A stretch of 64,000 nucleotides of DNA from Callorhinchus milii (lineage: Eukaryota): assembly GCF_018977255.1 (NCBI RefSeq), contig NW_024704765.1, positions 5,766,001 to 5,830,000 on the forward strand, written 5' to 3'. How positions within the stretch are numbered: the first letter of the stretch is position 1; each line of letters starts with the position of its first letter. The position numbers and the translations under genes were made by a program. Positions 3,201 through 41,831 of this stretch are shown here, in pieces. The notes under the pieces were generated by a model that saw only the letters and a program-made list of their open reading frames with translations, did not search any database and was not told the DNA's origin.

Positions 3201-4759
3201 AAGTGGGAGGGAGAAAACTGGCAAAGAGGAAAAAGAAATCTCCTGGGCAAATACACTAGGAGCTACGTATGGGATCAAGTTTCCTCCAAAAGCTCCTCCT
3301 CTCACATCAGAGCATCAATTGTTTTCAATTCCCATAATAACCATCCAATGGCTTCTACCAAAGAACTACCAAAGACTCCACGACAATATTGGGGTGGGGG
3401 GAACTCACCATCTCATCATTCCAGTTCCTGCCTAGCTTTGGCTTTCTACAAATGTTGAGATCAGTATCTGAACCTGCAACACAAGATCAGAAGTGAGTGA
3501 GTGATATTCTAGACTGGGTGGGGGGGTGGAGAGCCAACCTTCTGGCTGCTGAGGGCCAGGTGCCTGATTTGAGAAACGCCCAAGGGCCACATAAGCAACA
3601 TTTTTGTGTTTCCAGAACATAATCCGTAAGAATCACACGTGTTCTAAAACTGTATAACTATTACTTAATTTCACTGGATTGTGGTTACGGTGCAAGCTTT
3701 AACCATGAGGTTAAAGAATTCATAACCCAGTGAGAAATTAGGTTTTTTTTCAAAGCAACAACTTGCATTTATATCGCGCCCAGAGTGCTTAAACACCTTA
3801 CATACACTGTACTGGAGCTGGAGGGCGAACCGGGGTGTATTCAGGCCAGGACGTCTTTGGTCTACCAGGGTGTTTGGTGAGTCCCTCCTGTAATAGCTTC
3901 ACAAGCTCATGTTGACCAGTTTCCTCCAGACTCTCCAAAAAAGCAGGAAAGGCTCTTCTTCCACGAGTCTGCAAATCGATCACCAGCTGTCGGGCTTGAT
4001 CCCTGCGTGTGCCCGATTTCTGCAGTCAAACCAATTCGCCGTGAACTTTGAATGCTCATGACTTCGTTACTTTGGGCCGGCCGGACGCAGTAACTGCCCC
4101 GTAACATAACGTGCACTCGTACATTGCACTTACATTGCGACTCTCGTGCAGGAGAACGTCTACGGAGACTCGAAGCCCTTCACAGACTATACTGTAAAGC
4201 GAACTGACCGTGTATTTAGTGGGCGAATCTCGCCAGCCGGTTGTGCCCTGTGTGATTCCGGGTCAGCCCGGCCATAGGTAAACCTGCTGCTCTCCTTGCC
4301 ACTGAGTTATAATAGCTTATCAGCAACGAGAACCACACTCAGCCCCACTGAGCTTTGAGCCCAATTCTCTCCTCCCCGTCCTGTCCTGACCCCCCACCCT
4401 GTCCTGACCCCCCCCCCCGTCCTGTCCTGACCCCCCCCCCGTCCTGTCCTGACCCCCCCCCCGTCCTGTCTTGACCCGTCCTGACCCCTCCACCCCTGTC
4501 CTGACCCCTCCACCCCTGTCTTGACCCCACCTCTCCACCTCTGTCCTGACCCCTTCACCTCTGTCCTGACCCCCCACCCGTCATGACTCCCCCACCCCTG
4601 TCCTGACCCCCCCCCCGCCCCTCCTACCTGGATCTCCTCCAACATGTCCTGAGAGAAGATCCCTTTCGCCAACAGCGGATCGAGCAGGAGCTCTGGCTGC
4701 AGCTCGGTGACCAGCTCCACCCGGCGCCGCCGCAGGAGCTGCCTGTGTCCCTCCTCCAT
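214..4759 (-). CDS. CASP9: Caspase-9 (9 coding exons; 1-nt frameshift in exon 8 as given)
   Basis: Exons (minus strand): 4759-4628, 4019-3806, 3473-3409, 3067-2891, 2421-2332, 1957-1810, 1487-1311, 827-719, 327-214, all GT-AG. Translation gives a CARD ([17 protein letters not shown]...[15 protein letters not shown]), the catalytic His motif LSHG, the caspase-9-diagnostic QACGG, linker LQMD-AVPC and [21 protein letters not shown] and C-terminal [16 protein letters not shown]. About 408 aa if the exon-8 frameshift is corrected. Confidence 0.95.
520..700 (-). mobile_element. L2-type LINE/SINE 3' end fragment in a CASP9 intron
   Basis: (CAA)n tail plus tgcacttatagagggcctt...tgtcaggaggacgtcccaaggca is the reverse complement of the 3' tail seen at 63860-63920 and in the SINEs. 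Confidence 0.55.
900..1200 (+). mobile_element. CR1-like LINE 3' ORF2 remnant
   Basis: Degenerate translation RGTEYKSKE...[32 protein letters not shown] resembles the conserved CR1 ORF2 C-terminal region. Confidence 0.7.
4375..4620. repeat. GC-rich minisatellite (~20-22-bp unit, GTCCTGACCCC-based) at the start of CASP9 intron 1
   Basis: Repeated ctgtcctgacccccccccc units are directly visible. The CASP9 sense strand is G-rich. Confidence 0.9.
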
Positions 4760-5170
4760 TCTCCTCACTCAGGCAGGTAACCGACGCCGTCACTTCCGCC
4801 CGGCCGCGGCCACGCACTTCCGGGAGAGTGCGGAACATCACTGAGGGGGGGACCGGCTGCCCGGACCCGCGGCCTCGGGGGGGGGGAACCTTTCCCTGTT
4901 ACACCGCAGTGACCAGTTGGCCGCGTCTGATTGGTCGGCTCGAGCCGCCGTTGCTGACAGTTGTTTTACCGCCTCTCTTCGGGGGGGAGGCGGACGGGTT
5001 TCTGTCGTGTTTTCGGCTCCGGGGGCGTTAATAATAAAACAAACAACACCGGGCGGAAGGCAAGAGAAACGCGGCTTTAAATCAGCTCCAAAACGAGCGG
5101 GAAAGCCGAGGGGGGGAAAGAGAGACCGGAAGTGACGCTCACGGTTTCCGGTTCCTGCACAGGGGTCAAG
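4760..5170. promoter_or_regulatory. Bidirectional CpG-island promoter shared by CASP9 and DDOST
   Basis: Only 411 bp separate the divergent ATGs and the region is CpG-rich. ETS-CRE-like SCGGAAGTGACG occurs at 4799-4788 (-) and 5126-5137 (+), with another ETS site near 4815-4823, a reverse CCAAT (ATTGG) at ~4930 and a YY1-like CAAGATGGCGGC over the DDOST ATG. Confidence 0.8.
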
Positions 5171-10888
<5,718 letters not shown>

Positions 10889-11849: not shown

Positions 11850-12547
11850 AAGGACTTATTAACCGGTGCAACGCTAGACCAGGACGGGGGGGGTGGGGGG
11901 GGGATACACGCTAAGGCCGTGGTGCACGTACGGTCTTATCTGTTTCAAGACTGAGATAGGGCGGGTGGTGCGTTGGGAACGGGGTGGGTGGGGGGTGCGG
12001 GGGGGGGGGGGGGGTGGGTCGAGGGGAGGCGACGAGGCGGAGCGATGTGCTGGCTGGGAGGGGCGCGGAGCCCTGCCCTGGATCCCTCGGCCCGGGGGCC
12101 GCCCGCGGGACGCCGCCAGACATTTTTACGGCGGTGCGTCCGTCCGCCCGTCCGTGCGGGGCAGCGCGGTGCGAGAGGCGAGGGGTGTCACCGGTGGGTG
12201 GGGGGGGTGGGTGGGGGGAGAAGGGGGGGGTCGACCCTCGAGCGGAAAACGAACGAACGAACAAACAAAACAGCGCCAAAGTTTTAAGGCCATCGATCCG
12301 AGTGAAGGCAACGAGCGGGACACGTGGGGGGGGGTCACGTGGCCCGAGCACGGCCGGTCAGCTTTACGGCAGCCCCCCCGTGGGTTGGGCTCTCTTTGCG
12401 ACAGCGGTGGCGGGTGTTTGCGACAGTGCGGCGCGCGGCTCGTTGTCGGCCGCGGACTTGGCGGCGCGCGGTGAGGCGGAGCTCGGGCCCCGGAGACAGA
12501 CAGACAGACAGACCGGGAGGGAGGGAGGGAGGGAGAGCATCGCCGCC
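11850..12547 (+). promoter_or_regulatory. CpG-island promoter and 5' UTR of DDI2
   Basis: High CpG density; two E-boxes (CACGTG at 12321-12326, GTCACGTGG at 12334-12342); Kozak GCCGCCATG at 12542-12550. Confidence 0.7.
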
Positions 12548-15500
12548 ATGTTCCTGACCGTGTACTGTGTGCGGCGGGACCTGAGCGAGCTGACCTTCAC
12601 TCTGCAGGTGGACGGCGGCCTGGAGCTCGAGACGCTGCGGGCCCTGTGTGAGCTGGAGAGCGGCGTCCCCGCGGCCGAGAGCCAGGTACACCCCCCCTCA
12701 CACTCCCCCCCTCACACTGCCCCTCACACTGCCCCTCACACTCCCCCTCACACTCCCCCCCTCACTCCCCCTCACCCTCCCCCCTCACACTCACCCTCCC
12801 CTCACACTCCCCCTCCCCCCTCACACTCCCCCCCTCACACTGCCCCCCCCCTCACACTGCCCCTCACCCTCCCTCCCTCACACTGCCCCCTCACCCCTCA
12901 CACTGCCCCCTCACACTCCCCCCTCACACTGCCCCCCCCCCTCACACTGCCCTCACCCTCCCTCCCTCACACACCCCCTCACACTCCCCCCTCACACTGC
13001 CCCCTCACCCCCCTCACACTGCCCCTCACACTCCCCCCCCTCACACTCCCCCCTCACACTCCCCCTCACACTCCCCCTCCCCTCACCCCCCTCACTCCCC
13101 CCTCACACTGCCCCTCACACTCCCCCTCACACTCCCCCCCCTCACACTCCCCTCACACTGCCCCCCCCCTCACACTCCCCTCACCCCCTCACACTGCCCC
13201 TCACCCTCCCCCCCCTCACACTGCCCCCCCCTCACACTCCCCCTCACACTCCCCCTCACACTGCCCCTCACACTCCCCCTCACACTCCCCCCTCCCCTCA
13301 CCCCCTCACACTCCCCCTCCCCCTCACACTCCTCCCTCACCCCCCTCACACTCCTCCCTCACCCCCCCTCACACTCCCCCCTCAGCCCCCCTCACACTCC
13401 CCCCTCACTCCTCCTCACCCTCCCCCATACCCCCCTCTCCCTCACACTCCCCCTCCCCCTCTCACACTCTCCCCCTCCCCCTCCCACTCCTCCCTCCCCC
13501 TCCCCCTCCCCCACACACACAGGTTTTCCCCCCCACCCACACACACACACACCAGTCCCCACAACAGGGCCCTGGGGACACACCCAGAGCCAGGCTGCGG
13601 AAAAATACGCTCACTCACTCCCATCTAGTCCAGAGAGAGAAGGAAGGGCAGCCCTGTAATATGTAATGGAGCCCATCCGTGTGCGCGTGTGTGTATATAT
13701 ATATACAGTGTTTATGTAATATATATATATATTATAAATTTTGAGAGCGGGATGGGGCAGTTAGAGTTGGGCGTAAAGAGAAAGAAGGCATTGTTGTAGA
13801 AAGTGAAAGAGAATTACACAGCAATATAAATCTATGAATAGGCCACTTCCTGATTAATTTGTCAGTGGTATTGCTCAGGCAAGTTGTCACACTCTACATA
13901 TCATTACCAGCATAGATGCCGAACAACTGTGCAAACCTACGGTAAACAAATCCCAAGGGCCGGATAAATTACATCCGAGAATCCTTAAGGAACTAAGGAA
14001 GGGAATTGCAGGAACTCTGGCACAAATCTTTCAGACATCACTGGATACTGGAGAGATACTGGGGAAAGGCAGATGTTACTCCTATTTTTTTTGAAAAGGC
14101 AAGAAACGTGACGCAGGAAACTACAGACAAGTGTGTATGACATCCATTGTGGGTAAAGTTGTGGAGACTTTTATTAAAAATAAGATCGTGGAGCATCTGG
14201 ACAGTAAGCAAATGATAAAAGATAGTCAGTATGGGTTTATGAAGTGGAGATCCAGCCAAACCAATTCACTGGTTTTCTTTCTTTGGTTTTGTGTGTCAAA
14301 GGAGCTTGATAAGGGTAAGACAGTGAATGTTGTATATTTGTGTTTGTGCCCAATTAATACATGGATCGTTGGGAAAGAATTCCCCATCAAAATCTGTCAG
14401 TAAGGCATTCCGTTTTGTTTCTGTGTTAGATATTATTTGCAGAGCATGCGCTGACAGACAATCGCCGGACACTGGAAGCGTATGGACTGAAGGATGGTGA
14501 TGTGGTTGTCTTGCGTCAATTGGATAGACCACAGGTGCAGACTGGCCTGCAGCTCCCCGGGGCATCGGGTAAGAAATGCCAGAAAAGGGCAGCTGGTACT
14601 TTTGATTTGGATCAAATATTTCTTGTGCATCAACTCCATGCCTGCCACACACACAATGATCATTTAAGAAATACCTTTCATCATTGTGGTCCACCATTTC
14701 CCCTCCGCATGGCTTTTATGGTCCATCAACTCTCTAAAATGGCACAACGGTGAGATCTTCTCTCCTCCCGAACAGGCTCTGCTGTGTTTTTTTTAAAAAC
14801 AGTATTGCTGTCGAAATACAGTATCAAAAATTGGAGAAGCCAACAATCTTCTAGATTAATTGCCCATTGATCTTAAGACGGTTTGCGACACCTTGCTGTG
14901 TATAAAATGGTTGTTTTGTTTGTCTATAATGTTTTGGGGTGGGTAGAAGGGGTGAGGGTAGGGAGAGTGTGTGTGAGGGGGCAAGGGGGGGGTAATAATT
15001 ATTGTAATGCGCTTGGATTTGTTTTGTCACAGAAGGCAATATAAAAATGCAAGTTATTTTTGTCTAAGGGGAAAAGAGGATGAAATCCTGCCATCATTAC
15101 TAAAGTAGTTTAACAGGATGAATGGCCTGTCTCCATTTATGGCATCACTACATCATCTGATGCTTGGTGCAGCTAGTTCAGTTCTCCTCTTGACCTCTGT
15201 GTTTCATTTTCCTCTTCAGGACTTCCCAGGATTGACTTCAGTAGTATATCAGTGCCTGGAGCTTCGGTGCCAAGCAGACCACCCACTGGAACGTCTGTCC
15301 AGCAGCTGCCAAATCCAGCCTCCACCAGTGCTACCAGCTCTCCGCCCCCTGTTCCAACCCAACATGGATTGGAAAATAACCCAACATTACTAAGGGACAT
15401 GCTTTTAGCAAACCCACATGAGCTGTCCCTGCTCAAGGAGCGTAACCCTCCTCTTGCTGAAGCATTGCTGAGTGGAGACCTAGGTAAATATTGTCAGTTG

Positions 15501-16919
15501 TTTTAATTGCTCTCTATGTGGTTTACAGTTCCCTTATTACTATATGATTGTTTGCAAGATTGGTTGCACAATTGTATGGCGTTCTTATTCAACAGGGTGG
15601 TCGGTGAGGGTTGTTACTGTCTGTGTAAGTGTACAACGATTCTATTAGTTCAGCCGGTTCAGGGTCATTTTGTCCTGACTGTTCTTTGAACCCACAGAGA
15701 AGTTCACCAAAGTGCTGCGCGAGCAACAGTCAGAGCGAGCCCGCCGTGAGCAGGAGCGGATAAGACTTCTAAACGCTGACCCCTTTGACCTCGAGGCTCA
15801 GGCTAAGATTGAGGAAGACATCAGGTACGCGAGATGCACTGCTTGTTTTCAAATTTCCTTCAGTGACAGTAATAGCCCAGTACTGTGTTCCGTGTTGAGC
15901 ACTTTCTCAACATAGGGTTTGCTGGGTTAGTGCTAAATGCGCAGCTGATACATTACACTGACCAAGCTCAATCCACTGATACATTTTCTGATGCACTTTG
16001 TTAGTGCACATCGATCTATAATAATGTATAATAATAATCGTCCTTGCATGTAATACTTTATGCAAGTATTATTATGATATATTTAGCAATCTGATTTGCC
16101 AGTCTGTGATGTTGTAGTAACATTTGCTGTCTTACAATAGGCAGCAGAACATTGAGGAAAACATGACAATCGCAATGGAGGAATCGCCGGAGAGCTTTGG
16201 CCAAGTAGTGATGCTGTACATCAACTGCAAAGTCAACGGCCACCCAGTCAAGGCCTTTGTGGATTCAGGTCGGTACTTTAATTCAGTTCAACAATCGACT
16301 GGTTGAAGTATGTGCCAAAATGTGTCTGACAACTTTGAACTGTCTCTGACACAGGAGCACAGATGACAATCATGAGCCAGGCCTGCGCTGAGAGGTGCAA
16401 CATCATGCGACTGGTGGACAGGCGGTGGGCAGGCATCGCTAAAGGCGTTGGCACACAAAAAATCATTGGCAGAGTTCATCTGGGTGAGTAGGAATGACTT
16501 ATCATTACTGTCGTGGAGCATCTAGACAGTAATACAAAGATAAAAGATAGCCAATGTGGGTTCATGAAGGGGAGATCCTGCCAAAATAATTTACTGGTTT
16601 TCTTTGACTGTGCGATAAAAGAGCTTGATAAGGGTAAGGCTGTGGATATTATATATCGGGATTTCAGTAAGGACTTTGATACAGTTCCTCATGGACGGCT
16701 GATACTGAAAATGAAGAAAGTGGGAATCAGAGGAAGTATCTTGCACTGCATATGTAATTATCTGACCGATAGAATCCAGAGAGTGGTGGTACAGGGAATG
16801 TCCTCAGGCTGGGAGAATGTGTTTTCCGTATATTCTGACCAACATGGAGTCATAGTTTCAGCTTTTGACTTAATGGAAAGAAAAGGTTATGGGAATATCT
16901 TTTTATTGTTTATTGTTGA

Positions 16920-16954
<35 letters not shown>

Positions 16955-18103
16955 GGATATTTTGGTCAGTTGGTGTGTTTGTGTTGTACAGCCCAGGTGC
17001 AAATTGAAGGTGACTTCCTGCCATGCTCCTTCTCTATCCTGGAGGACCAGCCAATGGACATGTTACTTGGACTAGACATGCTAAAAAGACACCAGGTAAG
17101 AGGCTGAGTGTCCAGTTCTAGTTAGTGGAGCAGCCACACTCCTACAAAGAGAATCTGTCCCATTATTAAATTATGTACATTACAATTAAGCGGACATTTA
17201 AGATTATTTTTTGAAATTCTGCACAGTCTTCAATTTCAATGCAGTGATAATAAGCCTAAGATGGTGAATCATCTCAGCCCTCGGGATCTTTTGGTTTGAA
17301 TTTGTTTCTGTGTGTTAATTTCTGTTGCCTTCTATTTGATTGCTGCGTTGCCAGTGTTCCATTGACCTGAAGCGGGATGTGGTGGTGATTGGCACAACAG
17401 GAACAGAGACCCGGTTTCTGCCTGAGGCGGAGCTCCCCGAGTGTGCGCGACTGGCATATGGCATCCCACGCGATGATCTCCGTCCTGAGGAGATGGCAGA
17501 CCAGGAGCTCGCTGAAGCGTTACAGCGATCTTCAGAGGAATCGGGTAATTCACAAAATCTCTCTTTACAAAAATGTAGCATGGGTTCCCAGAGTGACATT
17601 ACAAACCCGTGGTACCCATGTGGGCAGATATATCTACTGGATAAACCCTTAGTTCTCCTTTTTCCTCCCAAACAACTAACCTTCAGGAGGATATCGGAAG
17701 GGTTGGAGAGGCTCAGAGGAGAGCAGGAGAAACCTATGGCTCTAACATATGCGGAAAGACTTGCACAGCTGAACTTCAAGCCAAACTGAAAGGGAAAATC
17801 CAGAGCTTTACGCTGTTGAGGGGTGTTAATTTTCTAAATGTAAGAGAGATATCGAGATAGATTGTGAGAGCAGAAGTAAACCCAGAGTTGTTGGCCTTGC
17901 TCTTTTGTAAAGGGAAGTTCGACCTTGTGACATTGGCAGACCCTGGGATTGCTAATGGAATCTGGACTCCAGCTGTGTGGCTGCATTGTGACTGCATTAC
18001 CTCATGACGATGTATTAACATGCATGCTGCATGCTTGAGTTTGTTAATCACGTCTGGCGTTGTGGTTTGTTTTCTCATCCTAACAGGACCCCCGCATCAC
18101 TGA
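12548..18103 (+). CDS. DDI2: DNA-damage-inducible 1 homolog 2 aspartic protease, short isoform (UBL-HDD-RVP-UIM), 411 aa
   Basis: Exons 12548-12685, 14430-14568, 15220-15483, 15698-15824, 16141-16268, 16355-16483, 16992-17095, 17355-17544, 18087-18103. [25 protein letters not shown]; LPRIDFSSI; [26 protein letters not shown]; retroviral-like protease [14 protein letters not shown]; UIM-like [12 protein letters not shown]; ends GPPHH*. Confidence 0.95.
12690..13550. repeat. C-rich minisatellite (~12-bp CCCCTCACACT(C/G) unit) at the start of DDI2 intron 1
   Basis: About 860 bp of near-tandem cccctcacactc/g starting 5 nt after the exon-1 donor. Confidence 0.95.
13945..14345 (+). mobile_element. 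CR1 LINE ORF2 (RT-proximal) fragment in DDI2 intron 1
   Basis: Translates to [13 protein letters not shown]...[28 protein letters not shown]...SQYGFMK, typical of CR1 ORF2. Confidence 0.85.
16512..16830 (+). mobile_element. CR1 LINE RT fragment in DDI2 intron 6
   Basis: [20 protein letters not shown]...[28 protein letters not shown] matches RT motifs; it overlaps and resembles the 14186-14340 part of the other copy. Confidence 0.9.
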
Positions 18104-18146
18104 TGCATGTTGTGTTTGTACTACGCTGAAGATGATCACAGTCCAG
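18087..18146 (+). other. DDI2: Putative 60-nt stop-codon cassette exon of DDI2
   Basis: Acceptor tttgttttctcatcctaacag|GA CCC CCG CAT CAC TGA; candidate donor CAG|gtatt at 18146/18147, 43 nt after the stop. Confidence 0.6.
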
Positions 18147-19183
18147 GTATTAAAGGCTTTTTTACTCAAGTAATATGACTCAACATTTCCACCATCGGTG
18201 GCCATGCCTTCAGCCAGTACGCCCCGAAACTCTGGAACTCTCTCATTCAATCCCTCCACCTTGTCCCCTCCCTCCCCACCTTCAAATCCTGCCTAAAGAC
18301 CTTTTTGATCATGTTTCACGGTCACCTCCCCCCTGGCTCAGTGTCTGGCTCCATCACTGTTAAGGCCTCCGGGAGGTTACACTGTGGGAAGGGGGCTATA
18401 TAAATGGAACTTCTTGTTGTATGACTTGCCTAGTGAATTATTTGCAACATTAACCACTTACATTTATAGGGCACCTACAAGAAATGTCTTGGATGTGTTT
18501 TACGGCATGAGTTTACTTAGAAATGAGTGATTTGCAGCTAATCTGTGCCCAGGGACAGCAATTGAGATAAGATAATTGTTTTGAATTTAGGATGTGAATT
18601 TGAATGAGGAGTGTAAATATAAACCAAGCTAACCCCAGAGCAAAACTCAACATTTTTTCTCAATGGAGTTGGGAGTCCCTTAACAGTACCTGAATCTCAT
18701 GGTAGACGGGACGTAAATTAACGACTCAATCAAATGGCGGGTGATAACTGGAAATAATATTAGCCGTTAATCTGGGCTGAGGTTCAAGGTTGGGAAGATA
18801 ATTTCTGGGCAGACCCCAGAATGTATTTCTTTATACAGCAGTCAATTAATGGCTGGAATGAAAGAGAGGGTGAGCTGAGCTGGCTGCATGATGAGGGTTG
18901 TTTCAAGGCACTGAAAAACATAAGTTCTTTGAGATCTGAGCTGCCTTGTAACTGTAGTGAGATTCACCTGAAGGTTTGCAATCGAGACTGTTGAGATTGA
19001 ATTAGTATTAAAATGCGAATGTAATTAATTCTGCCAAACCAGCAACAAGTGTAAAATAAATAGAAACCAAGGAATAGAGCGATTGATGTTTGAGACTTGT
19101 AGTTTGTTTTGCCCATAAATTGGAACATTTGTGTGTACGTGGCATTTGGCAAATTATTTCTTTTCTATCCGTTTTATTTGTAG

Positions 19184-21213
19184 GAAACGAAAATGGCAAA
19201 ACTACCTCATTGGAAACCCCTTCATTACTGACACCTCATCCTAATCTCCCTCTTCCCACGACGGGAACTGGTGAATTTCAAGCCCCTTATAGTCAAAGTC
19301 AGTTGGACCATTCCGTTTCCGTCCCTGCTAGCCTTCCTTTACCAAAACAGAATGAATCTGATTTTAGAAGAAGAGAAGACCTTCAGATGCCTGAGTGTGC
19401 AGAAACACAGGCAGAAAATCAGCTCCTGCCGGGACCTTCACAGTGTCTTTCTGACCATCTGTTGGCTCTGCCGTCTCCTGATCATCTGTCTGTTCCTTCT
19501 CAGGCAACGTTAAGAGGAAAGCATACACCACACCCAGAAACCCTACGCAGCAGCTCACAAAACCCCTCAAGACAGCTGAATACAGATACTGATGAAACGT
19601 CTGTGCCAAAATCTTTCTTGCCTGATATAACACATCCGCGTGAGTTTGGCAAGGAAACGAGAGATTGTTCTGTTCCGAGTGTCAGAGCAAAGCCTCAGCT
19701 GGAATCTCCAGGTGAAGAAGGTTGTGATTTGGAGGCAGCACCAATGAGACAAATTGAGGATATTTCTTCAGACGCTCAGCCATATCCTGATCCCACTAAA
19801 TCAAGCCAAACCGCCTCGCCTCAATTGACTCTGGGTGACTGCTCCTCCAATGATCACCATTTGCAAGAGCATGTTGACTCTGACAAGGGTGCTGATGGCG
19901 ACCTTCTTGAAGAGGCGACTGAGCCATTGGTAATGGACCTTGAAATACACGAGAGAGATCTGAATAGCTGCTGTGAGAAAACTGCAGTTTGTGAACGAAC
20001 GTCTACTGGAAATTCAAGTAGAACGGCTGAGTGCTTTGACGCTGTAATGGAGGTGAGTGCCACTGACCAACAAGCGGAGGAGAGCGACACAGCTACAGAG
20101 ATGGACAGCAGTGACCCAAAAGAAGGAAGAGTCATGGATTCAGATCAGGACAATACTCTACGGATGGAATTTGAGGAAACATTCTTGAAGAACAGCTCCA
20201 GTTCGGCAGCAAATAATTCTGGTGAGGTTAGCAGCAGAAGTCACAAAGGAGAAGCTGCTCAGAGTAGTGATGAAATGCATGTTGATGCCCATTTGTCCAC
20301 AGATATGAAACCTCCCTCTCAACAAGGTACCCCATTGGCACCAGACTGTGATCCAAATGATTCCTCTCTCTCACCTGTAGCTGCTTTGATCGAGTTGCAT
20401 CAGCAATTAGTCTCCAAATGTCATGAAGCTGACTTCAATGTATCAGCCGCTGAGGGGATCATCTGCCGGCCAGAAGCTGTCAGTCAGGGAGAGCGTGTTC
20501 AGCCGATGGAAGCATGTGAAGAATCGCTGACTGATGGTGGCACAGCAAGCGAGATGTGTCACAGTGCAGAGCAGCACATTGAAGTGATGGAAGTGGCAGA
20601 GCAAGATCCTTCTGAAAAAAGGGATGAAGATATGGAGTGTTCCGATCGCCCAGCTCCACAAGTCGTCTCGGAGGTCAGGCAAGATGCCCAAGATGTGGCC
20701 CAGGAGATTTTGACACGAGAAGCTGAGCACGAGGCTGTGCCACCTTCTGTGCTTGTGTCCGAGAACATGACCAAGCAAGCGGACGTCCCCCCAGCCAAGG
20801 GGATTCCAGAAAACCAACCAACATCTCCAAAGATTGGTTCGGGAGATGTGGTGCGTACGCCTGCGTCTGCAACAGATAATAATGACGGCCAGATTTCTCA
20901 GCACACTGCTGCAGAGCTGCAGGTGCCTGATATTGCACTGTGCTCCTCGGAGATTTCAGCAGCTAGGATGCCTTGGGAAAGGACCATGGAAGCAAACGTG
21001 GATGAGCCCAATACATATTGCAGGGAGAGCAGCCCTCTTGACCGAGGGCCCACAATTCCTTCACTGCCGATTTTCCCAGCTGCTAATATTGAACAAATAA
21101 GAAGATCAGGATTTACTGAGCAAGAAGCCATCGAGGCCCTTGAGCGGTCTGATGGCGACACAGAGTTAGCTCTTCTGCTGCTTCTAGCCAGACAGATTGT
21201 GGTTCCTGTCTGA
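19184..21213 (+). CDS. RSC1A1: RSC1A1 (RS1)-like long exon with C-terminal UBA domain; in-frame alternative last coding exon of DDI2
   Basis: Open frame of ~676 codons after a strong acceptor (ttttctatccgttttatttgtag|GA AAC GAA). The body is acidic, Ser/Pro/Glu-rich and low-complexity. The C-terminus IFPAANIEQIRRSGFTEQEAIEALERSDGDTELALLLLLARQIVVPV* matches the RSC1A1 UBA tail. Its phase matches the DDI2 exon-8 donor. Confidence 0.85.
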
Positions 21214-22599
21214 AGCTGGTTAATAGGAATCGGTGGACACAAGTGAAACTGTTATTTTTAAAGATGTGGTCTTATGTAGCCTGGTCTCAAAGTTTAAGAT
21301 TGTGTGGAATTTTGGCAAACCCTCAAATTCAATCTTAGTCAATTCACTTTTACAGTATATCGCTGTGAAGTGCTGCGAGACCTCTCAACGACGTGATAAG
21401 GTGCTATATCAAATGCAAGGATTATTACTGTTGTTAATAATTTGGAAGCCAGTTGAAACATGCTGTGTGGAAAGCCTGATTTTTAACTTCAGTTTAAGAA
21501 ATTTCCAAAATTCTGCACAACACTAAATTTTAAGACCACCTCCTTAAGACTGATTTCAGGTCTTCAATTCTACATCTGATCATGTTCCACGCTCAAGTCA
21601 GAACCCATCACCTTTGCATCTGTTTGGAACTTACTGTCTGTACTGTTGTCATTAGTCACCAACAAACTGCTTGTGATGAAGTACCATTGTGCTGGAGGTG
21701 CCACTCTACAGTAATTATTCCACTCAGAAAATTTTAAACTTATCCGACAACCGTTTGTCTCCATTTGTCCCACCACCAACTACATACAATCTGTAACAGT
21801 AATTAAAACCACTTGTTTTTAAAAGGATAGCAAAAATACATAGCCCGTTTGAACACTTGGAAAATGAGCTACACTATTATTATTTGTGCTGAGTCAGGTT
21901 TTATCCTTTAGATTTTGGGTTTGTTCGTGCGTTTGGCATAAGCTTGAGAAGATGTGGGAAGGTCCATCCTTAATATCCTTCATCGGGAGTTTATCACCAA
22001 AATGTTGGATCTTCTTCTCGTAAATCTCTCAGCAAACCTATCGAGACACATTCGGTATTCAGAGTTGGCGAGGATTGTTTTGAAGGCGTTTGTCCTTTCT
22101 GGTGCGTGATTATGAACAGCCGCTTGATGGGATATCTGGTCTTTGTTTTTCTCTTTTTTTAAACCAAATAAAAAAAAGAAAAATCGCCAAGCATGGTTTT
22201 GGTTTTGTCTGGTGGACGGTTTAAGACAAGTTAACTCATCTGTCACATACGGAAACCCATCACCATGCTTAAGAGTACAGAAAAGAGCCCAATATCTGAA
22301 CTATTTGGGACTGGCCCTTTATGGATATGGAGACTGAATAATGGGTAATCAGGAAAATACAAACCTGCTACTGTGCAAACCCAAAACTTCGCCTAAAACA
22401 GTGTATTAGCACCTTCACTCTTTTTCTCACTCTCTGAGTCTCTCTCTGCAGAGTTTCTCTCTTAACTTTCTCTCTTTGAATACCTTTCCCTCATTCTGCC
22501 TTTTTTCTAAATAATATGTTTCTTCTACTTCCTCTCTGATTATTAGCAAGAAATGTTATAATATTAAAGGCCTCTAACCTCAGATCTAACGGCACTAAA

Positions 22600-22860
22600 C
22601 TTACCCCCATTGCATCAGTTCTAGCCAGTCTCTATCGGCTCCCTCTTGCTGAACGGATCAGTTTCAAGATTCTCACACTTGTTTTCAAATCCCTTCATGC
22701 CCTTGCACCTCCCGACCTCTCCGACTTGCTTTACCCCGCAACCCACTACCAGCTACCTCTGCTCGAGTGGCTCCGACCTTTTCTGCGTCCCTTGTGCCCT
22801 CTGTTCTACTATCGATGGTCGAGCTTTCAGCCACTGGGTCCCAAAACTGGAAGACTTCCT
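22600..22860 (+). mobile_element. L2-like LINE 3' ORF2 remnant
   Basis: Resembles the 63490-63720 part of the longer L2 copy (catcagttctagccagtctctatcggctccc...tttcaagattctcacacttgttttcaaatccc). Confidence 0.7.
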
Positions 22861-23839
22861 CTTCCCGGCTCAGGGTCATGCTCTGCCACTGTCAAGTGCT
22901 CTGGGACGCTAAGCAAGTAGTGAAAACAGCCCTAACTTCTCAAGTCTCTTTGTTACTGAAACCTACTGAAAAGTTATTTTTCAATTATTTTTTAACCCCC
23001 CCCCCCACACACACTCCCCATTGACGCATGCCTGTGCCCCAGTCCTCAGCCTCATGATCGGAGGTAGTTGCACGAATAATAGTTGCTTTTTAGTGTTTTT
23101 CATCCAAGTGACCATTGTCCCATCTGTGCCTTTGAGATGAGGCAAAGCAGAGCTCTCCTCAGCCAGCTGCAACATACATGTATAGCACTAGGGGGCGCTA
23201 AAGAGAGACCAGAATCACGAGTGAATGCTGATTTGAGCCTCCCTTGGCTTACCCACAGAATAATAATAATAATAATTATTATTATTGTTACTTACCCAGA
23301 GAATTCCAGGGCTAATTGATCCATCCCATTGCAGCCTTAGCTGAGGTCAGCAAATTTAAACACGCTGGGATTCAAATCGGCAAGCTTCCTCGGTCCGTGC
23401 GTCGCACTTCTGCCAGACGTCTGGACAGTATGATAAGGTGCTACATCAAATGGAAAGGATTATTATTATTATTATTATTATTGTTGTGATACCGCACGAC
23501 CGGGGCTGGTACTTGCCGCACCGTTTCGACAGCTTTCCCGTGTACTTCAATGCTAGGAAGGGAAAAAAGGAGAGTTTCTCCTGGTGTCATTGTCAACATC
23601 TGAAGGACGGCGCCTGTGAGAATGCAGTGCAGCACTGGGCCCCCCCCCCCCTCAGCACTGCATGGCGTCCCACCAACGTGACCTCCTCCGGGTGCCAATA
23701 TATACATTAAACGTAAACTTGCATTGGTTGATCTGTCAGTTTAGACTGAGCTCGGGGTGGGGGCTCAAACACACTTACTCTGAGACGAGACTCAACGTCT
23801 TGCGTTTATAGGGCACCTCTTACAGGTCTCGGAGTGCTG

Positions 23840-24684
23840 AACAGCGGCGGAGCATTGACCCTCAGCCTGCGAGCGAGGCGCGCGGGGGGGGGGGGCGCGC
23901 GGCGGGGGGGGGGGGCATTGCGGCGGTTACAAGAGAGCAATCCTAATCCGATTCGGATCACAAACGCAAGGGATTTTAAACGCTACATCTGTTTGACCGG
24001 GTGCGCGGCTCTCGGGGGTCGCCAGGCGCCCGGGTGCGGGCAGGGTGTGCCAGGAATTTAAAACACAACACTAAAACATGATATGAATCACAAAGTAAGT
24101 TATATTAAGTAAAGTGAAGCAGGGGCTCTGCAGCCCAAAGTGGCACCAAAAGTAGCCCAATGTTATGGGGCTTTGCCTCGCCAGGGATAGCAGCACAGGG
24201 GCCGATTTCGGCTTACAGTGCATTTTGAAAAAGGCCTTTAAAGTGTGTGGGAGGACGTCTGGAAGGTTTAAATTTAAAAATTATTAAAACAAAATGAAAG
24301 CCTTCCCCCCCACCCCCACCCGCCCCTCATTAACCAAAGCAGCAGTAAACCCGCCCAATCGGGCGTGAACCCGCCCAACCCGCCTGTGTGTGTGTGTGAC
24401 GCTATTACGTTGGGCGCGTGACGCTCCGACGCGGCGTGAGGCGTGCGTGCGTGCGTGAGTGAGCGAGCGCGTGCCGTCGCGGCTGCGCTGTGGGCTCTGG
24501 AGGAAGATGGCGGCGGCGGCGGCGCCCAGTGGGTGAGAGAGAGAGAGAGCGAGAGAGGGAACGGGAGAGAGGGGACAGCGCGGCGGCCCACACGGAGACA
24601 CCGAGAACCGCCACGAGGAGCGGCCTTTCGGCGCGCGGTTGAGCCGGCGGGGGCGGGGCGGGAGCTGGAGGCGACGCCAGGCCG
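23840..24684 (+). promoter_or_regulatory. FBXO42: CpG-island promoter and non-coding first exon of FBXO42
   Basis: CpG-rich; CCAAT near 24356; YY1-like AAGATGGCGGC at 24504-24514; donor CCG|gtgagt at 24684/24685. Confidence 0.65.
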
Positions 24685-25447
24685 GTGAGTGAGAGCCGCA
24701 GCTTAGGCCGCGACCCCCCAACCCCCCCACCACCCCTCCCCGGCGCCTCGGGTAGAAGCCTCGCCGGCCCCGGGGGGGGAGGGGAGGGAGGCCGGGAGAG
24801 GGAGGGCGGCTCTCTGAGGAGGAGGAGGAGGTGGCGGGCGGTGACTGTGCGAGGCCCCGGGTCTCACGGTGGGGGTGTCTCCCCCCCCTTTGTGCTGCGC
24901 CCCTTCCTCTCCCGGAGTCGGGAGACCCCGAGCGGCCTGAGCTCCCTGGGCTCCTCCCTCCCCGGCAATGTGAGGGGTTTGTCGGCTTCAGGGGGGGCCC
25001 CGGTCTCCCCGCAATGTCATTGTCCGGCAGCAGATTGCATGGGACTCCGCGCCTTTTCAGGTCAGGAGGACCTTCCCGACCCCGCTGGACAGTCGGCAGT
25101 TTGCACCCCAGCCCGGGTTTGGGGTCAAGGGAGGGGGTAGAGAGCAACCGAGAGGGGGTGGGTGTTGCGGGGTGTGGTGGTGGTGGTGGAGGTGGTGAGT
25201 TGGAGGGGAGTGGGGGGTTGGGGGGTGGGGGGCGCAATGGGCAATGGGGAGGATGTTCGAAGGCAATGGTCAAAGAGGAAGCTCTTGAGGTGGGTACTGG
25301 AACGTCCGCTGAGGGAGGCGGAGGCTGCGGAGCGGTCGAAAGGCCGAGCCCTGTGCAAGCGAGAGGCTGAAACGGCCCCTGGAGGGCACCAGCTGCTGGT
25401 GGGAGGGAGGGGTGGGGGGGGCTGCCTGGGGTGGGGTGGGGAGGGGG

Positions 25448-25850
25448 GCTGCCTGCCGTGGGGTGGGGAGGGTGGCGGAGGGGGGCTGCCTGCCGTGGGG
25501 TGGGGAGGGTGGCGGAGGGGGGCTGTCTGCCGTGGGGTGGGGAGGGTGGCGGAGGGGGGCTGCCAGCCGTGGGGTGGGGAGGGTGGCGGAGGGGGGCTGC
25601 CTGCCGTGGGGTGGGGAGGGTGGCGGAGGGGGGCTGCCTGCCGTGGGGCGGGGAGGGTGGCGGAGGGGGGCTGCCTGCCGTGGGGTGGGGAGGGTGGCGG
25701 AGGGGGGCTGCCTGCCGTGGGGTGGGGAGGGTGGCGGAGGGGGGCTGCCTGCCGTGGGGCGGGGAGGGTGGCGGAGGGGGGCTGCCTGCCGTGGGGTGGG
25801 GAGGGTGGCGGAGGGGGGCTGCCTGCCGTGGGGTGGGGAGGGTGGCGGAG
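25448..25850. repeat. 37-bp G-rich minisatellite, ~11 copies, in FBXO42 intron 1
   Basis: Unit gctgcctgccgtggggtggggagggtggcggaggggg recurs at 25448, 25485, 25522 and onward. The 37-aa periodicity of the spurious ORFs equals 3 units. Confidence 0.95.
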
Positions 25851-26677
25851 GTGGTAAATTGAATGTAGACCGTAATGCCGTAACTGGGGGAAAACCTGGG
25901 ACTCTTACAATAACCCTGTTCCTTGTACCTGCTTTATTTTTGCCCCCCCCCCCCAGTTGCCAGCCACACAAAGCGGAATCACGCACCTTTTCCCGCTAAT
26001 ATTCAGTCAATTCACTGTACGGTCTCTTCTGTGAAGCCCTTTGAGACGTCTCGAAGACGTGACAAGCGCTATATCAAATGGAAGGATTATTATTATTATT
26101 AGCAGTGATATTGACTCTGGCTGAGTGATCACCTTCCCGGGGTGAAGGTTGAACAGTAATGTTTCAGTCTATGTAACCTGGTATCATCCACCGCGGTGCA
26201 AAACTCAATCCCATTTTATATTGCTGGACGCACCTGCAAAGCATCCCGGGATACTTCCACCCCAAAGGGTCCTTGAAATCTGCAAAGTTCTCTATTGTTT
26301 CTAGATTCACAAACTGTTCTTGTTCTCTGTGATGGCCGTTGACTCTTTAAACATTTAAGCGTGTCCACGCCTATATATGGTAACTTGATGTGTTCACCGA
26401 CTCGGATGTTCTTTTGTTGGCTCTCGCGTGGTTACTTTGGAGGTCAGGAATCTGCACTTCAGTGTCCTAGCCAACAATCTTCTAGATTAAATTGATTATT
26501 CACCTCATGGCTGCTAGTCAGACATTGTTTGGTGCTGCCCTATTTGTCTGCAAAAAAACAACCACTTCACAATAACTAGCGGAAGAGTACTTTGAGACAT
26601 TTTGGATGTGATGCACTATAAGATGAAAGTTCTCTCTGTGTGCATTCAATATTGACATGAATGTTGAATTTTTTTAA

Positions 26678-37290: not shown

Positions 37291-40200
37291 AAATGTAGCA
37301 AATGAAAAGCTCATTTTTGAAGTGCTCCGACCAAGGCTCTTTGTAAATGGATGCATATCAGGTTAACCTTCCCATGCCTTGGTTTGAATTCACACTCGGG
37401 GGAGCTAACGTACTGTTTTTCTGAATGGATTCCTTAATCCCCGTTTAGAAGACGCAGCGAACGTCTGGGAATGGACCCGATCAGAGTGGACTTCTGTGTC
37501 TTGTACAGTCTAGTTTCCATTGGGAGTCCTGAAATTTCCCCGATTAAGCAATCCTGATAAGAAACATTGCACGTTTGACCCCCATTATGGTTTATGAAAC
37601 TTTATGGTCCAGGTATATTTTATATTTGAGTGATTTTCCTCCTTCCTAAACAAACCATGTCTGTCGTGCTACTCGTATCATCCTCTTTCCTAATCCTATT
37701 AAGATTCAAGAAATAGCAATGAAGTTGAATCCTATGCAAATCTTTCATCCACAAAACTTGATCATTCAGATCTGCCTCCAGTTTACCCTCCTGCCAATAC
37801 CCAACTTATGAGTACCTGACCTGTGTTATACTCTTACTGTAACAGTTGTGCAGTAGCTATTTGACTGTGGTATGGCCTGATTTACAAGACTGTTTTTGAA
37901 CTTATATGTAGTCTTTCCTATTTGCATGCCTATCTCCTGCCCTGATGTTTTGGAGCAACTCCTATTTCACTACAGAAGTTAAAACTGTGTGTGTGTAAGG
38001 GGTGAGGGGAGAGCTATCTGAATTTTGAGACACCCAATGCTGTTGCAAGCATCCAAAGTCTTCAGGCCTGCTGACTTTAGGACTGCAGTCACTCATTGTA
38101 AATGTGGGGGGAAATGTGTATGTACAAAAAATTAGAAGCGCAAAACAGCAGGGAGCAGGGAAATGATACACAACCATTTAACTAAGTTTCATCTCTGTTT
38201 GATGGTGCATTCCCATCGATTTTTTTTTAACAAAATGTTCTTTTCAATGCAAAATTGCCTATTTGTGTTCAGCTACTGACCGAGATTTAAAGAGTGTCGT
38301 TAATCTGTTTAGGTCTCATGATGATTGCATTCATGGGTGTCTTACTGTTAGTGACTGGAACTTGGTGTCATTTCCCGAGGGCTTGTTTCACCTTTTCATG
38401 TGACACAGTATAGAGACGTTTTTACTATTAACAGTGTTAAAGGAAAATAACATTTTATTGGAAAATCTATGTCAATAATATATTTTTGTGCAGTGTTGGT
38501 CCATGGCTAGAATGTTTGCCACCCAGAATAAGTGTTACTTGTGCAAAAGGTGCTTGTTTGAGAGGCATTTGAGGTAAACACCCTTGGGTGCCTCTATACA
38601 GAGTCATGGAATGTGTCACTGCTCCCCATCCTTCAAATGTTGTTCGTTTTCCTCTCACAAGGCCCAAGTGGCAGAGCTAATTGGGTGCTGGACTTTGAAC
38701 AAAGAACAATACCTGTTTGAATCACTACTCTTGTTTCAGATGCAATTCATTTTCTGCAGGTGTGAGGTTTAGAAAGGCAAATGGTGGAAATTCTTGCAGT
38801 CCTGCCAGGCTAGGCAGGTAGGATAGCCACACAATCAAGTCATCATGTGTTATCCACACAAGATCTCCTGCCAACATAGACATCAAGCTTACTGTGTTAA
38901 CTTTGGGAGAAGAGAGAGACAAACAGACAATCGAGGGCCTAACATTGCACCTCGGTATAATTAGGTCGGGACTGAATTTCTGCACCAATCTTTCTGGATC
39001 TCTCTGCTATTCGTCACACAATGCTCCTGATTAGTTTGAATCGTTTCTAATAGCTTTTTTCATTCATAAATGATTCAGTTGGTTTGCAGTGATCTAGTTC
39101 TGGGTATCCAGAATTTGCCATTAGTTGTTTATTGCTGGTAATGATACAAGGAATGCTGCAGATAACACCCCCGCCCCCCCCCCCCCCCACACACACACAC
39201 ACACATTAGGGAGTAAACGCCATATGCTTAAACTTCTACTAAATGTTTTCTTCCGCAACAATTTTGATTTTGAAACGTAACTTTTTTTTTCCCCCTGTGT
39301 TCCTCCCCCTTCTACTGACGGTTAATTCATTCCCTGACATCCTGCAACCAGGAGGGGCTGAGTTCCTCTGTGCAGCCGTTGACAATGCTGGCCCACATTG
39401 GCAGGCAAATCATCCACTAAACAAGAGACACGTCTGAAGATTGCTCTCAGAACTCGCAACCTTTTGCTTTGGGAGTTGAGCATTCATCCAGGCGTGTGTG
39501 GGGAAACCGTGTTCCAAACCGACAAACAAAGAAACGGCGAGTGAATTCTGACTCGAGTGAGGTTTAATCTATTACAATAAGGTTTAAAATGGACAAAAAA
39601 AGACACATTTTTCAGTAGAAGATATAATACGTTTTAAAAGGGCAAATCCTGACCCAACACTCAACGTTTTCGGATTGAGTAGAATTTTCTAACAACTTGG
39701 CTCTGTGTTGAAATTACCGTTGTGAGGAAAGACGAGTGATTTAAATGTATTTTGGTGAACTGTGCTTAGACCTAACTTTCTCTCCCCTCAGAACAACTTC
39801 TGTTTATATCAGAAGCTTTCATCTCCAATGCAGTGGTCCGTCTATAGTGGGATCTGCACGTTGTGCCCCACACAGACGCACTGGTAGCTTATGGGCAGAG
39901 CAGGTGTGTTTGCCTGCATCCATGATTTGAGTGTAATGCAAGTATTTTGTAAAACTGTTTGAAGTGACCTTTAATTAAAAGATATTACTTAAAAGAATGG
40001 GATCGTTTTGTGACGTGACTGTGGAAACACCCGTGCTTATCTTGGACCGAGGAGGGCAACTTGCTGCGGGGAACTCTGCGGGGAAATCTGTTGCCACGCT
40101 CGCCCACAAAACTCTCGCTGGCCGCACTGCACCGAGTGAAAGGCGCTCTATGAATGAAACCTTGTTGTTGTTACACGGCGTATCCTGCAAAGCGCTTTTA

Positions 40201-40386
40201 GATGTCTTGCCAACGTGAAAGGCACCGCACTAAGCGCGAGGACGACCGTTGTTCACAGAATTGGTGACAAATAATCCTCGCGTGTGATAAAGCGCCTCGT
40301 CACGTCGTCAAAGGGCAGCTCAAAAGTGTTTCAAAGGATACACTGCCCTTTAGAAAATCAACAGCGAAATACTCGCAGATGCTGGA

Positions 40387-40702
40387 AATAATAATCCTTG
40401 CATTTGATATAGCGCTTTTCACGTCGGGAGGACGTCCCAAAGCGCTTCACAGAACACACTGTAAAGTGAATTGACTGTATATTTGTGGGCAAACGCGGCA
40501 GCCAATTGCGCACAGCAATGTCCCACAAACAGTTGTGGATTGAAAATGACCAATTTATTATTGTTTTGGGTTTTGAAGGGATTATTATTGGGCTCTGTGT
40601 GGAGTAAGGAAACTTGCCCGAGGTTTCGCCCTCTGCCTGGAACTGAACCCAGGTCTGTCACTTGCAAAGTGAGTGCTCTAACCACTGAGCCACAGGACTC
40701 CA
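40387..40702 (-). mobile_element. Full-length tRNA-derived SINE (Deu-domain-like core, L2-type tail)
   Basis: Reverse complement of the 43105-43429 copy: tRNA-like head GGAGTCCTGTGGCTCAGTGGTTAGAGCA, core TGTGGGACATTGCTGTGCGCAATTGGCTGCC, tail ending in (ATT)n. Confidence 0.9.
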
Positions 40703-40844
40703 ATCTGGAGCAAAAGCAGAAGCGGCCGGGAACCCTCGGCAGGTCAGGCAGCGGCTGTGGAGAGAGGAAAGTGAGTCAACGTTTCGGGTCCAGGAGCTTT
40801 ACGTCAGAACGAACTGGGGCGGGCGGTGGGTGTGGGGGATGTTG

Positions 40845-41600: not shown

Positions 41601-41679
41601 GCGATGGAGCACTTGGCGCGGGAGTGAGTGAACATCCATTGGGGCGGAATGTCCCCCAAAGCCCAGAGGCAGCACCGCT

Positions 41680-41831
41680 GGAGCAGCGCCACGTGGGGGA
41701 AGGGGCGTGGCGAGCGGCTGCGCGTGACGTCGACGGGCGGCGCGGCGACGACAGCGGCGGCGTGACGCTGACGTCAGATCCGACGCAGGACGCAGCGGCG
41801 GCCGGGAAGCGTTGGCTGCCATGGCAACCGG
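41680..41831 (+). promoter_or_regulatory. CPLANE2 promoter / non-coding exon 1 with CRE and RFX X-box
   Basis: TGACGTCA at 41769-41776 plus CRE half-sites; GCTGCCATGGCAAC at 41815-41828 (1 mismatch to the X-box GTTGCCATGGCAAC); donor CGG|gtagg at 41831/41832; acceptor ttccaag at 42570. Confidence 0.65.

Follow-up and report, generated by a model that had tools for sequence, protein, structure and literature searches.

In the stretch of 64,000 nt from the elephant shark Callorhinchus milii that was analysed here (the window, in whose positions all coordinates are given), the gene DDI2 is followed on the plus strand by a long open frame of the RSC1A1 type. The evidence makes it likely that the two belong to one gene with one promoter, in which a 60-nt alternative exon carrying a stop codon chooses between a short DDI2 and a long, UBA-bearing DDI2. 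Over all 675 residues, the big frame matches at 100% identity the RefSeq model 'protein DDI1 homolog 2 isoform X1' of C. milii. Both isoforms are already RefSeq models for C. milii and about a hundred other species, so that the pair is largely known; what is new here is the context of the stop, TGATGCATG, together with three TGCATG hexamers within 89 nt.

In the proposed scheme, the 60-nt cassette would be either included in or skipped from the pre-mRNA after exon 8, which encodes the UIM. Inclusion, the default in all the runs sampled, would bring a stop after GPPHH and yield a DDI2 of 411 amino acids (aa) with UBL, HDD, retroviral-type protease and UIM. Skipping would join exon 8 in frame to the last exon and yield a DDI2 of 1082 aa, with an acidic disordered linker of about 625 aa and a C-terminal UBA, and this long form would have the UBL...UBA arrangement of yeast Ddi1. 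With only 43 nt between the stop and the final splice junction, the inclusion mRNA should escape nonsense-mediated decay (NMD) by the 50–55-nt rule.

Exon 8, the micro-exon and the last exon are compatible in frame

Exon 8 (17355–17544, plus strand, defined by sequence and RNA joints) encodes the UIM LAEALQRS and ends in phase 1 as AATCGG/gtaatt, with one base carried over. The next exon (exon 9, 18087–18146, plus strand, defined by sequence and by both of its RNA joints in four of four runs) is the 60-nt micro-exon, whose acceptor, ...tcctaacag/GAC, follows a good pyrimidine tract (ttgttttctcatcctaacag/) and whose donor is CAG/gtatta. With the carried G it reads G-P-P-H-H-TGA, the TGA at 18101–18103 lying 43 nt before the donor. 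Read through in the DDI2 frame, it gives PPHH, the stop and then CMLCLYYAEDDHSP; it is thus an in-frame cassette with one blocking TGA. A further acceptor at 19184 (ttatttgtag/GAA; cttttctatccgttttatttgtag/) also opens the DDI2 frame, from which 2030 nt run to the stop at 21211–21213. This coding part of the last exon (19184–21213, plus strand, from sequence, RNA joints and a database match) is the RSC1A1-type frame of 675 codons plus stop, which forms the 3' untranslated region (UTR) when the micro-exon is included and encodes the C-terminal 675 aa when it is skipped. An initial annotation, made from the letters of the window alone, had placed exon 8, the micro-exon, its stop, the 19184 acceptor and the 2030-nt frame at these same positions, all of which hold, and had located the stop within the distance of about 50 nt at which escape from NMD would be expected.

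The dominant mRNA includes the micro-exon

Splicing was examined in Logan contigs of four runs from three studies (X1, X2, X4 and X6), aligned to 16050–21950. The runs are not recorded as RNA and were chosen as small assemblies that hold about half of the words of the stretch, as exons alone would; the joints in their contigs are bounded by GT..AG, which shows a spliced origin. The joints 17544>18087 and 18146>19184 were both present in all four runs, as were the upstream DDI2 joints 16268>16355, 16483>16992 and 17095>17355, and single contigs reach from exon 5 through exon 8 and the micro-exon to the end of the big frame (X6 record 16, 3509 nt; X4 record 12, 2707 nt). The GPPHH-stop exon proposed from the sequence is therefore real, and in the spliced RNA it is followed by the RSC1A1-type frame as the next exon, as had been supposed. 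Since the 19184 acceptor is spliced to the stop exon and the stop exon to DDI2, translation of the dominant mRNA yields the short protein, with the RSC1A1-type frame left in its 3' UTR.

The joint expected from skipping, 17544>19184, was found in one of the four runs (X1), in one short contig with a depth of 21.2 compared to 67.6 and 62.5 for the inclusion joints. Of the junctions by which the initial annotation would be judged, those of inclusion were seen throughout and that of skipping in this one run. The skip contig resembles the short assembly-graph bubble that would be expected if both forms were present, which is thin evidence; the missing joint in the other three runs is not proof of absence, as contigs drop rare variants. 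Transcript-level support for skipping was found in another species: three 914-aa fused proteins (P0100, P0305 and P0306), belonging to the 90% cluster of Danio rerio XP_021332474.1, lie on Logan contigs of 2922–3589 nt, too short for genomic DNA and thus spliced cDNA.

The same contigs bear on whether the RSC1A1-type frame could be a gene by itself, transcribed from a promoter in intron 9 in the manner described for the 'intronless' RSC1A1 of mammals, the DDI2-linked contigs then resulting from read-through or assembly merging, an explanation that we consider improbable. Low-depth unspliced contigs (7–18) over introns in X1 and X2, which may be pre-mRNA, could be taken in its favour where they cover the acceptor (X1 record 3, 18281–19211, depth 9.3) or lie within the intron (X2, depth 7–13), as could the stand-alone models of 582–703 aa in other cartilaginous fishes. 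However, the joint of the 19184 acceptor to the micro-exon recurred in four of four runs, its shorter side measuring 59 letters in X2, X4 and X6 and 30 in X1, and the depths over DDI2 exons and the big exon, crude as such values are, were alike (71 and 94; 68 and 74–80), or both parts lay on one contig (X4 and X6). Moreover, the tetrapod start Met is replaced by Thr here and by Ser in sharks, and the first in-frame ATG of the exon is codon 68, downstream of a conserved block described below. One of the models in question, catshark P0240, starts in exon 8 out of frame, which points to a longest open reading frame (ORF) call on the inclusion mRNA.

Predicted products and their domains

The short product, 411 aa ending in ...EESGPPHH, equals P0276 (XP_007905424.1), and the long product, 1082 aa, equals P0001 (XP_007905422.2), which is 100% identical to the window frame; the lengths that had been derived for inclusion and in-frame skipping thus agree with RefSeq, and the earlier caution that the fusion might not be new was justified, both isoforms being there for C. 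milii. The 90% cluster of P0001 holds XP_007905422.2 (isoform X1), XP_007905424.1 and XP_007905425.1 (411 aa, isoform X2) and UniProt entries of both lengths. For the searches the window exons were taken separately, and whole proteins were represented by database models. In the 411-aa model, Pfam detected ubiquitin (PF00240, 27.4 bits, cut-off 25.4), Ddi2_HDD (PF24669, 106.1 bits) and Asp_protease (PF09668, 178.8 bits), with the catalytic DSGA at residue 264 and the vertebrate UIM pattern L-x-x-A-x-x-x-S of Siva et al. (2016) as LAEALQRS at residues 395–402; exon 8 alone gave no Pfam match.

The linker was found to be acidic and predicted disordered, as had been claimed. The first 625 aa of the last-exon frame have an isoelectric point of 4.38, with 116 D+E against 45 K+R, and in a structure prediction made with an alignment of ten RSC1A1-type frames, 586 of the 675 residues had pLDDT <50. 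The exceptions were a helix at ORF residues 397–417 (20374–20436, plus strand, from alignment and structure prediction), which carries the motif SPVAALIELHQQLV kept in all aligned relatives, and a bundle at residues 632–671 (21079–21198, plus strand) identified as a UBA from Pfam, structure prediction and fold and sequence searches. Its three helices (632–640, 645–654 and 659–671) were predicted at pLDDT of about 94, and the best 50 matches in a fold search were mostly UBA or UBA-like with Z of 4.5–6.5, modest values as expected for 45 residues; among them, Mud1 1z96 aligned over 35 residues with Z 5.3 and a root-mean-square deviation (rmsd) of 0.7. The best two sequence matches of the UBA in the PDB were 2g3q (Ede1 UBA, E 0.009) and 2mr9 (Ddi1 UBA, E 0.026), and a profile of the 10 RSC1A1-type frames gave no match to PDB sequences at E up to 1. 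The UBA proposed by the initial annotation is therefore upheld as a predicted three-helix fold that matches UBA structures. In Pfam, PF00627 reached 23.3 bits (cut-off 22.4) with the last 60 aa taken by themselves, whereas its score in the whole 675-aa frame was 18.6 bits, below the cut-off.

Invertebrate Ddi1 was also considered as the nearest relative of this UBA and was rejected. The matches of 413–486 aa that had suggested it were without a protease domain in 10 of 10 scanned, five having a UBA as their only domain, and are RSC1A1-type ORFs. With these ruled out, the link to Ddi1 rests on the fold, the weak sequence matches and a paper of 2016 (Siva et al., 2016).

The fused layout recurs across jawed vertebrates

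When P0001 was searched against proteins of 595–1893 aa, 289 matches were obtained, and the 120 listed were fused DDI2+RSC1A1 models. Those of about 850–1200 aa came from sharks, coelacanth, gar, bowfin, sturgeons, teleosts, frogs, salamanders and a caecilian, and also from turtles, crocodile, birds, squamates, platypus, marsupials and many placentals, Bos taurus NP_001422309.1 'isoform 2' being a placental example. A single chain ran from the exon 8 anchor PECA[RK]LAYG to the UBA end in 94 of the 120, and exon 8 and the last exon were compatible in frame in all 94 of these parsed long forms. At the level of gene models, the contrast with mammals drawn by the initial annotation thus does not stand, fused models being annotated in placentals, marsupials and platypus.

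Short forms were collected with the DDI2 part of P0001, and their tails were counted from the AEAL core of the UIM. In 69 of 96 parsed short forms the protein ended 2–5 residues past exon 8, the rest carrying longer alternative tails; in a separate set of amphibian short forms, 21 of 22 had a short tail (QQKP, QRKP or similar). The tails of sharks and rays were G+HRRH, RRHH, HQRH or RQRH, many of these proteins also being of 411 aa, and the others were E+RQKP in amniotes, D+TPKP in salamanders, E+HQKH in lungfish and G+QH or QN in teleosts. The recurrence of the short tail across groups makes the stop exon as old as jawed vertebrates, and fused models and short tails throughout mark this as the general gnathostome layout rather than a shark relic. 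The observation made on this locus is confirmed, and its interpretation is partly supported: the core was right, and it was overstated in presenting as a special ancestral state of one lineage what recurs across jawed vertebrates.

In sauropsids, DDI2 models with a third C-terminus were also seen, about 30–40 residues past exon 8 and ending in Cys-x-x-x like a CaaX prenylation box (CALL, CVLL, CILL, CVLS, CILA, CVLQ or CVIF; turtles, crocodilian, birds, squamates and tuatara). The proteins concerned are P0129, P0134, P0141, P0146, P0147, P0149–P0152, P0159, P0161, P0163, P0164 and P0166. Separately, P0240 (Scyliorhinus canicula XP_038677587.1, RefSeq 'isoform X1', 703 aa) appears to have been called as the longest ORF of the inclusion mRNA. 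It opens with 36 residues that translate exon 8 and the micro-exon in a frame other than that of DDI2, and its start is probably not a real N-terminus.

Across its whole length the big frame shared 34–41% identity with the frames of sharks and rays; identity to tetrapod frames was 19–21%. These values speak to the possibility that the frame is an untranslated relic, mere 3' UTR left open by chance or recent descent. That it follows a stop codon in the dominant mRNA and is mostly poorly conserved and predicted disordered would fit such a relic, but a 2030-nt open frame with this level of full-length identity among cartilaginous fishes, and with a UBA, a helix motif and a junction peptide conserved across jawed vertebrates, makes the relic very hard to credit.

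The start of the last exon is conserved where no start codon exists

Conservation was scored as the mean share of the top residue over the 94 anchorable long forms among the 120 listed of 289. Residues 411–420 (GKTTSLETPS) scored 0.72, compared to 0.74–0.75 for the helix motif, 0.75–0.86 for the UBA and 0.12–0.5 for most of the linker, so that the junction-proximal peptide NENGKTTSLETPS (19186–19224, plus strand, from the comparison of long forms) is among the most conserved blocks of the exon. Of the 99 long forms parsed, 81 had T[TS]S[LPRQ] after the UIM core, 80 of them at residue 17; STS was found in 10 more, and another seven were models with a different junction.

In placentals, birds, turtles, crocodile, salamanders and a caecilian, the block just precedes the Met of stand-alone RSC1A1 (TTSLEMPSLP, TSLGMSSLP). 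Elsewhere the position of this Met is occupied by Thr in the elephant shark (LETPS), Ser in sharks, Pro or Ser in coelacanth and ray-finned fishes, and Thr in marsupials. In the C. milii last exon, no in-frame ATG occurs before codon 68, which follows the conserved block and whose surroundings (cttcagATGc) make a weak context. Conservation of the block where no start codon exists shows protein-level constraint just past the acceptor, and fits translation within a longer protein.

A second conserved block of the linker was observed, LD(H/R)S-x-S-x-PAS, in the region 19528–19545 (P0001 residues 447–456), which reads RSxSxP in sharks, turtles, birds and ray-finned fishes and HSVSVP in the elephant shark; we take the RSxSxP form to resemble a 14-3-3 mode-1 site.

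Sequence around the micro-exon stop

The stop of the micro-exon is embedded in TGATGCATG. An ATG at 18103 overlaps it (TGATG) and closes after 8 codons, and another at 18107, two codons past the stop, reads in phase through 18146>19184 into the entire UBA frame. The hexamer TGCATG occurs at 18104–18109 inside the micro-exon, and two further copies, at 18021 and 18028 (18021–18033, plus strand, from a hexamer scan), lie in intron 8, 54–66 nt upstream of the acceptor. Three of the 15 plus-strand copies of the window thus fall within 89 nt, in a window where the hexamer is under-represented (23 on both strands vs. 45.9 expected). UGCAUG is the RBFOX site, and RBFOX binding in or upstream of an exon favours skipping. 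In a literature search on Ddi2 with Rbfox, the papers examined were false matches on the DOI string 'ddi223', and no Rfam family, SECIS included, was found in 17000–24500 at E up to 0.1, which had been sought on account of the in-frame UGA.

In other species the micro-exon nucleotides were read from peptides only, in which letters at wobble positions are unreadable. The catshark protein P0240 (703 aa) continues as ...ITDACC...EDDHSPG/KENGK, which matches frames 1 and 3 of the C. milii micro-exon, as a one-base length difference would give. The Logan record P0243 starts with MHVVF, frame 2 of the C. milii micro-exon, Hyla sarda P0266 starts with MMHVCV, and the Logan record P0265, with a placental-type junction peptide, starts with MCAAAGVGPRT/EKSGKESTSLG. 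Peptide identity in non-coding frames implies conservation, in distantly related jawed vertebrates, of the nucleotides that surround and follow the stop. By arithmetic from peptide lengths, the distance from stop to junction in these other species would be about 26–45 nt. Equal longest-contig size suggests that P0184 (402 aa) and P0243 (671 aa) share one contig of 3560 nt.

These starts raise an alternative in which the inclusion mRNA would be the sole RNA of consequence and have two cistrons, the second being reached by restart at AUG 18107 or by readthrough of the UGA, with the skip joint as splicing noise; we hold this to be unlikely. The product would be either a separate RS1-like protein, about 689 aa long, or a fusion in which the 20 micro-exon codons are read through. 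The in-frame 60-nt cassette with a single TGA suits such an mRNA, as does the frame open from ATG 18107 through 18146>19184 into the UBA frame, and models or ORF calls elsewhere start in the homologous micro-exon, namely P0243 and P0266, P0265 (MCAAAGVGPRT+EKSGKESTSLG) and P0244 of Merops nubicus (MVLGSAAQK+NSDKETTSLE). The conserved junction peptide, in addition, lies upstream of every in-exon Met in C. milii. Nevertheless, eukaryotic ribosomes generally restart inefficiently once they have translated a frame of 411 codons, both micro-exon ATGs are in a weak context, and the Rfam search mentioned above found no family. The in-frame ATG, moreover, varies by species, being that at 18107 here and the stop-overlapping one in P0243 and P0266, and catshark P0240 needs an out-of-frame ATG in exon 8, implying that neither micro-exon ATG is in frame there. 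The examples are also biased, as such models arise only in species with an in-frame ATG; by contrast, exon 8 and the last exon are compatible in frame in 94 of 94 parsed long forms.

Speculatively, the elements of the micro-exon might act together as a conserved three-way device and not as a simple stop cassette, in which the TGATGCATG stop overlaps one start, a second start follows, one UGCAUG lies inside and two copies precede the acceptor by 54–66 nt. RBFOX-type factors might then drive tissue-specific skipping to give the UBA-bearing DDI2, while the inclusion mRNA would give DDI2 and, by termination–reinitiation, an RS1-like protein, although we would set little store by this combination. 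If true, it would explain 'RSC1A1' expression in species without the tetrapod start Met.

Points that weigh against one gene with an alternative exon

Several points count against a single gene in which the 60-nt exon chooses between two DDI2 forms. The skip contig has 27 letters on its shorter side, under the 31-letter bridging rule, and was flagged 'between: not known', and X2, X4 and X6 showed inclusion only. Contigs of this kind give no isoform ratios, transcript starts or ends, and the RNA status of the assemblies was guessed. The 1082-aa and 411-aa products of this locus are predicted proteins, and most long-form models elsewhere are automatic predictions that may copy each other via homology-guided annotation. 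Conservation of the junction peptide, which shows the peptide to be coding, would fit a DDI2 fusion and a product started in the micro-exon alike. Finally, run-to-run polymorphisms in the big frame (5 synonymous and 8 non-synonymous, giving a ratio pN/pS of 0.47) are too few to prove constraint.

Other features of the locus

DDI2 starts on the plus strand at about 12548, and a tblastn of P0001 against the window placed eight coding exons before the cassette region. Coding exon 1, with the start Met and the beginning of the UBL, lies at approximately 12548–12706 (tblastn and ORF list), and exons 2, 3 (HDD region) and 4 at approximately 14430–14570, 15213–15500 and 15697–15870 (tblastn). Exon 5 (16139–16268), where the protease domain starts and whose border with exon 6 holds the catalytic D-S-G-A, exon 6 (16355–16483) and exon 7 (16992–17095, donor CAG/gtaaga) are delimited by RNA joints in four of four runs. 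All of these are on the plus strand, as is the 3' UTR (21214–21950), which in contigs of all four runs reaches at least 21950, the end of the stretch examined.

Within this 3' UTR, at about 21369–21565, the summed contig depth reached 1,000–81,000 in the four runs and many contigs ended at 21383–21427; the segment is a dispersed, highly transcribed, SINE-like repeat (SINE, short interspersed element) and had no Rfam match at E up to 0.1. Another repeat lies in intron 9 at 18217–18413, where the depth is raised in three of the four runs (513 in X1, 371 in X2 and 83 in X4, as against 0.5 in X6) and there is a loose end at 18268. Reverse-transcriptase fragments were detected in intron 6 (16513–17007, plus strand; RVT_1, 27.0 bits, below the cut-off of 29.6) and in intron 1 (14131–14403, plus strand), the latter with no Pfam match and the similar peptide DSQ.GFMK.RS. 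Intron 1 also contains about 1 kb of C/T-rich simple sequence (12648–13628, plus strand) with PHTPP/LTLP repeats in open frames, and the GC content over 12001–14000 is 0.645, with a GC skew of −0.335.

Upstream of DDI2, a CARD-domain exon (4310–4768, minus strand; PF00619, 26 bits), presumably caspase-9-like, and the first exons of an OST48/DDOST gene (5132–5728, plus strand; PF03345, 56.6 bits) stand head to head around a GC-rich island. Downstream there are GC-rich blocks at 24001–26000 (0.676) and 40001–42000 (0.641), the latter with a G-over-C skew of 0.476.

Significance and comparison with known systems

If the preferred explanation is right, DDI2 and RSC1A1 would form a single jawed-vertebrate gene, from which skipping of one 60-nt exon could produce a DDI2 with a UBA. 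We see in this an under-used fact of annotation rather than a discovery, to which the conserved stop context and the UGCAUG cluster add a handle on regulation. The skipping form may be a regulated, translated isoform, and the micro-exon may, as the initial annotation supposed, control ubiquitin binding of the NRF1-activating protease. Should the long isoform exist as a protein, it would bear on how DDI2 recognizes heavily ubiquitylated NRF1 and could affect its processing; Rsc1a1 and Ddi2 knock-outs may then each touch the other's transcript, which would affect how they are read.

In the literature searched, which had subscription journals and supplements outside its coverage, no publication on the fused isoform or the exon switch was found. 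In the part of Siva et al. (2016; PMC4962041) that was available, the UBA of RSC1A1 is traced to DDI2 and the old Ddi1 UBA and the same UIM is identified, vertebrate Ddi1-like proteins are all said to lack a UBA, DDI2 being described as a protease that lost it and has only weak ubiquitin-binding elements, and the word 'splice' is absent. In contrast, the gene models and RNA joints show that the DDI2 and UBA parts can still be joined in frame. The gene models thus contradict a statement on UBA loss that is still current in the DDI2 literature. RSC1A1 is unmentioned in the available part of PMC11109483, and the SGLT1 literature, as far as represented by the available part of Koepsell (2020; PMC7462918), treats RSC1A1/RS1 separately.

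The RefSeq and Ensembl DDI2 isoforms (C. milii XP_007905422.2 and XP_007905424.1, Danio rerio XP_021332474.1, Bos taurus NP_001422309.1) describe the same two products; there is no structural difference from these models, which are silent on regulation, NMD geometry and the conserved stop context.

Mammalian RSC1A1/RS1 is alike in its orthologous placement immediately past DDI2 exon 8 (same strand), in the helix motif and in the UBA end, ...LALLxLLA(K/R)xIVVP. It is unlike in that the C. milii frame is an exon spliced to DDI2 (four of four runs), not an independent intronless gene, and has Thr in place of the start Met, which in tetrapods opens the sequence MxSLPxSDGF. RS1 is a regulator of SGLT1 trafficking that functions via an N-terminal RS1-Reg domain with a QSP motif, according to the available part of the review (Koepsell, 2020; PMC7462918). 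The QSP motif was found nowhere in P0001 and was absent in 9 other non-placental forms checked, whereas it was present in the 2 placentals checked.

Yeast and invertebrate Ddi1, a UBL–RVP–UBA shuttle and protease, has the domain order of the long form, and the predicted C. milii UBA superposes on the yeast Ddi1 UBA (2mro_B) over 44 residues with Z 5.9, rmsd 1.8 and 30% identity. Compared to yeast Ddi1, however, the C. milii long form would have a UIM and an acidic disordered linker of about 625 aa before the UBA, and the UBA would be optional, gained by exon skipping.

Poison cassette exons resemble the micro-exon in being small alternative exons with an in-frame stop and AG/GT flanks. The difference lies in the stop, which here is 43 nt from the last junction and predicted to be NMD-insensitive, so that inclusion would give the main productive form and not act as a decay switch.

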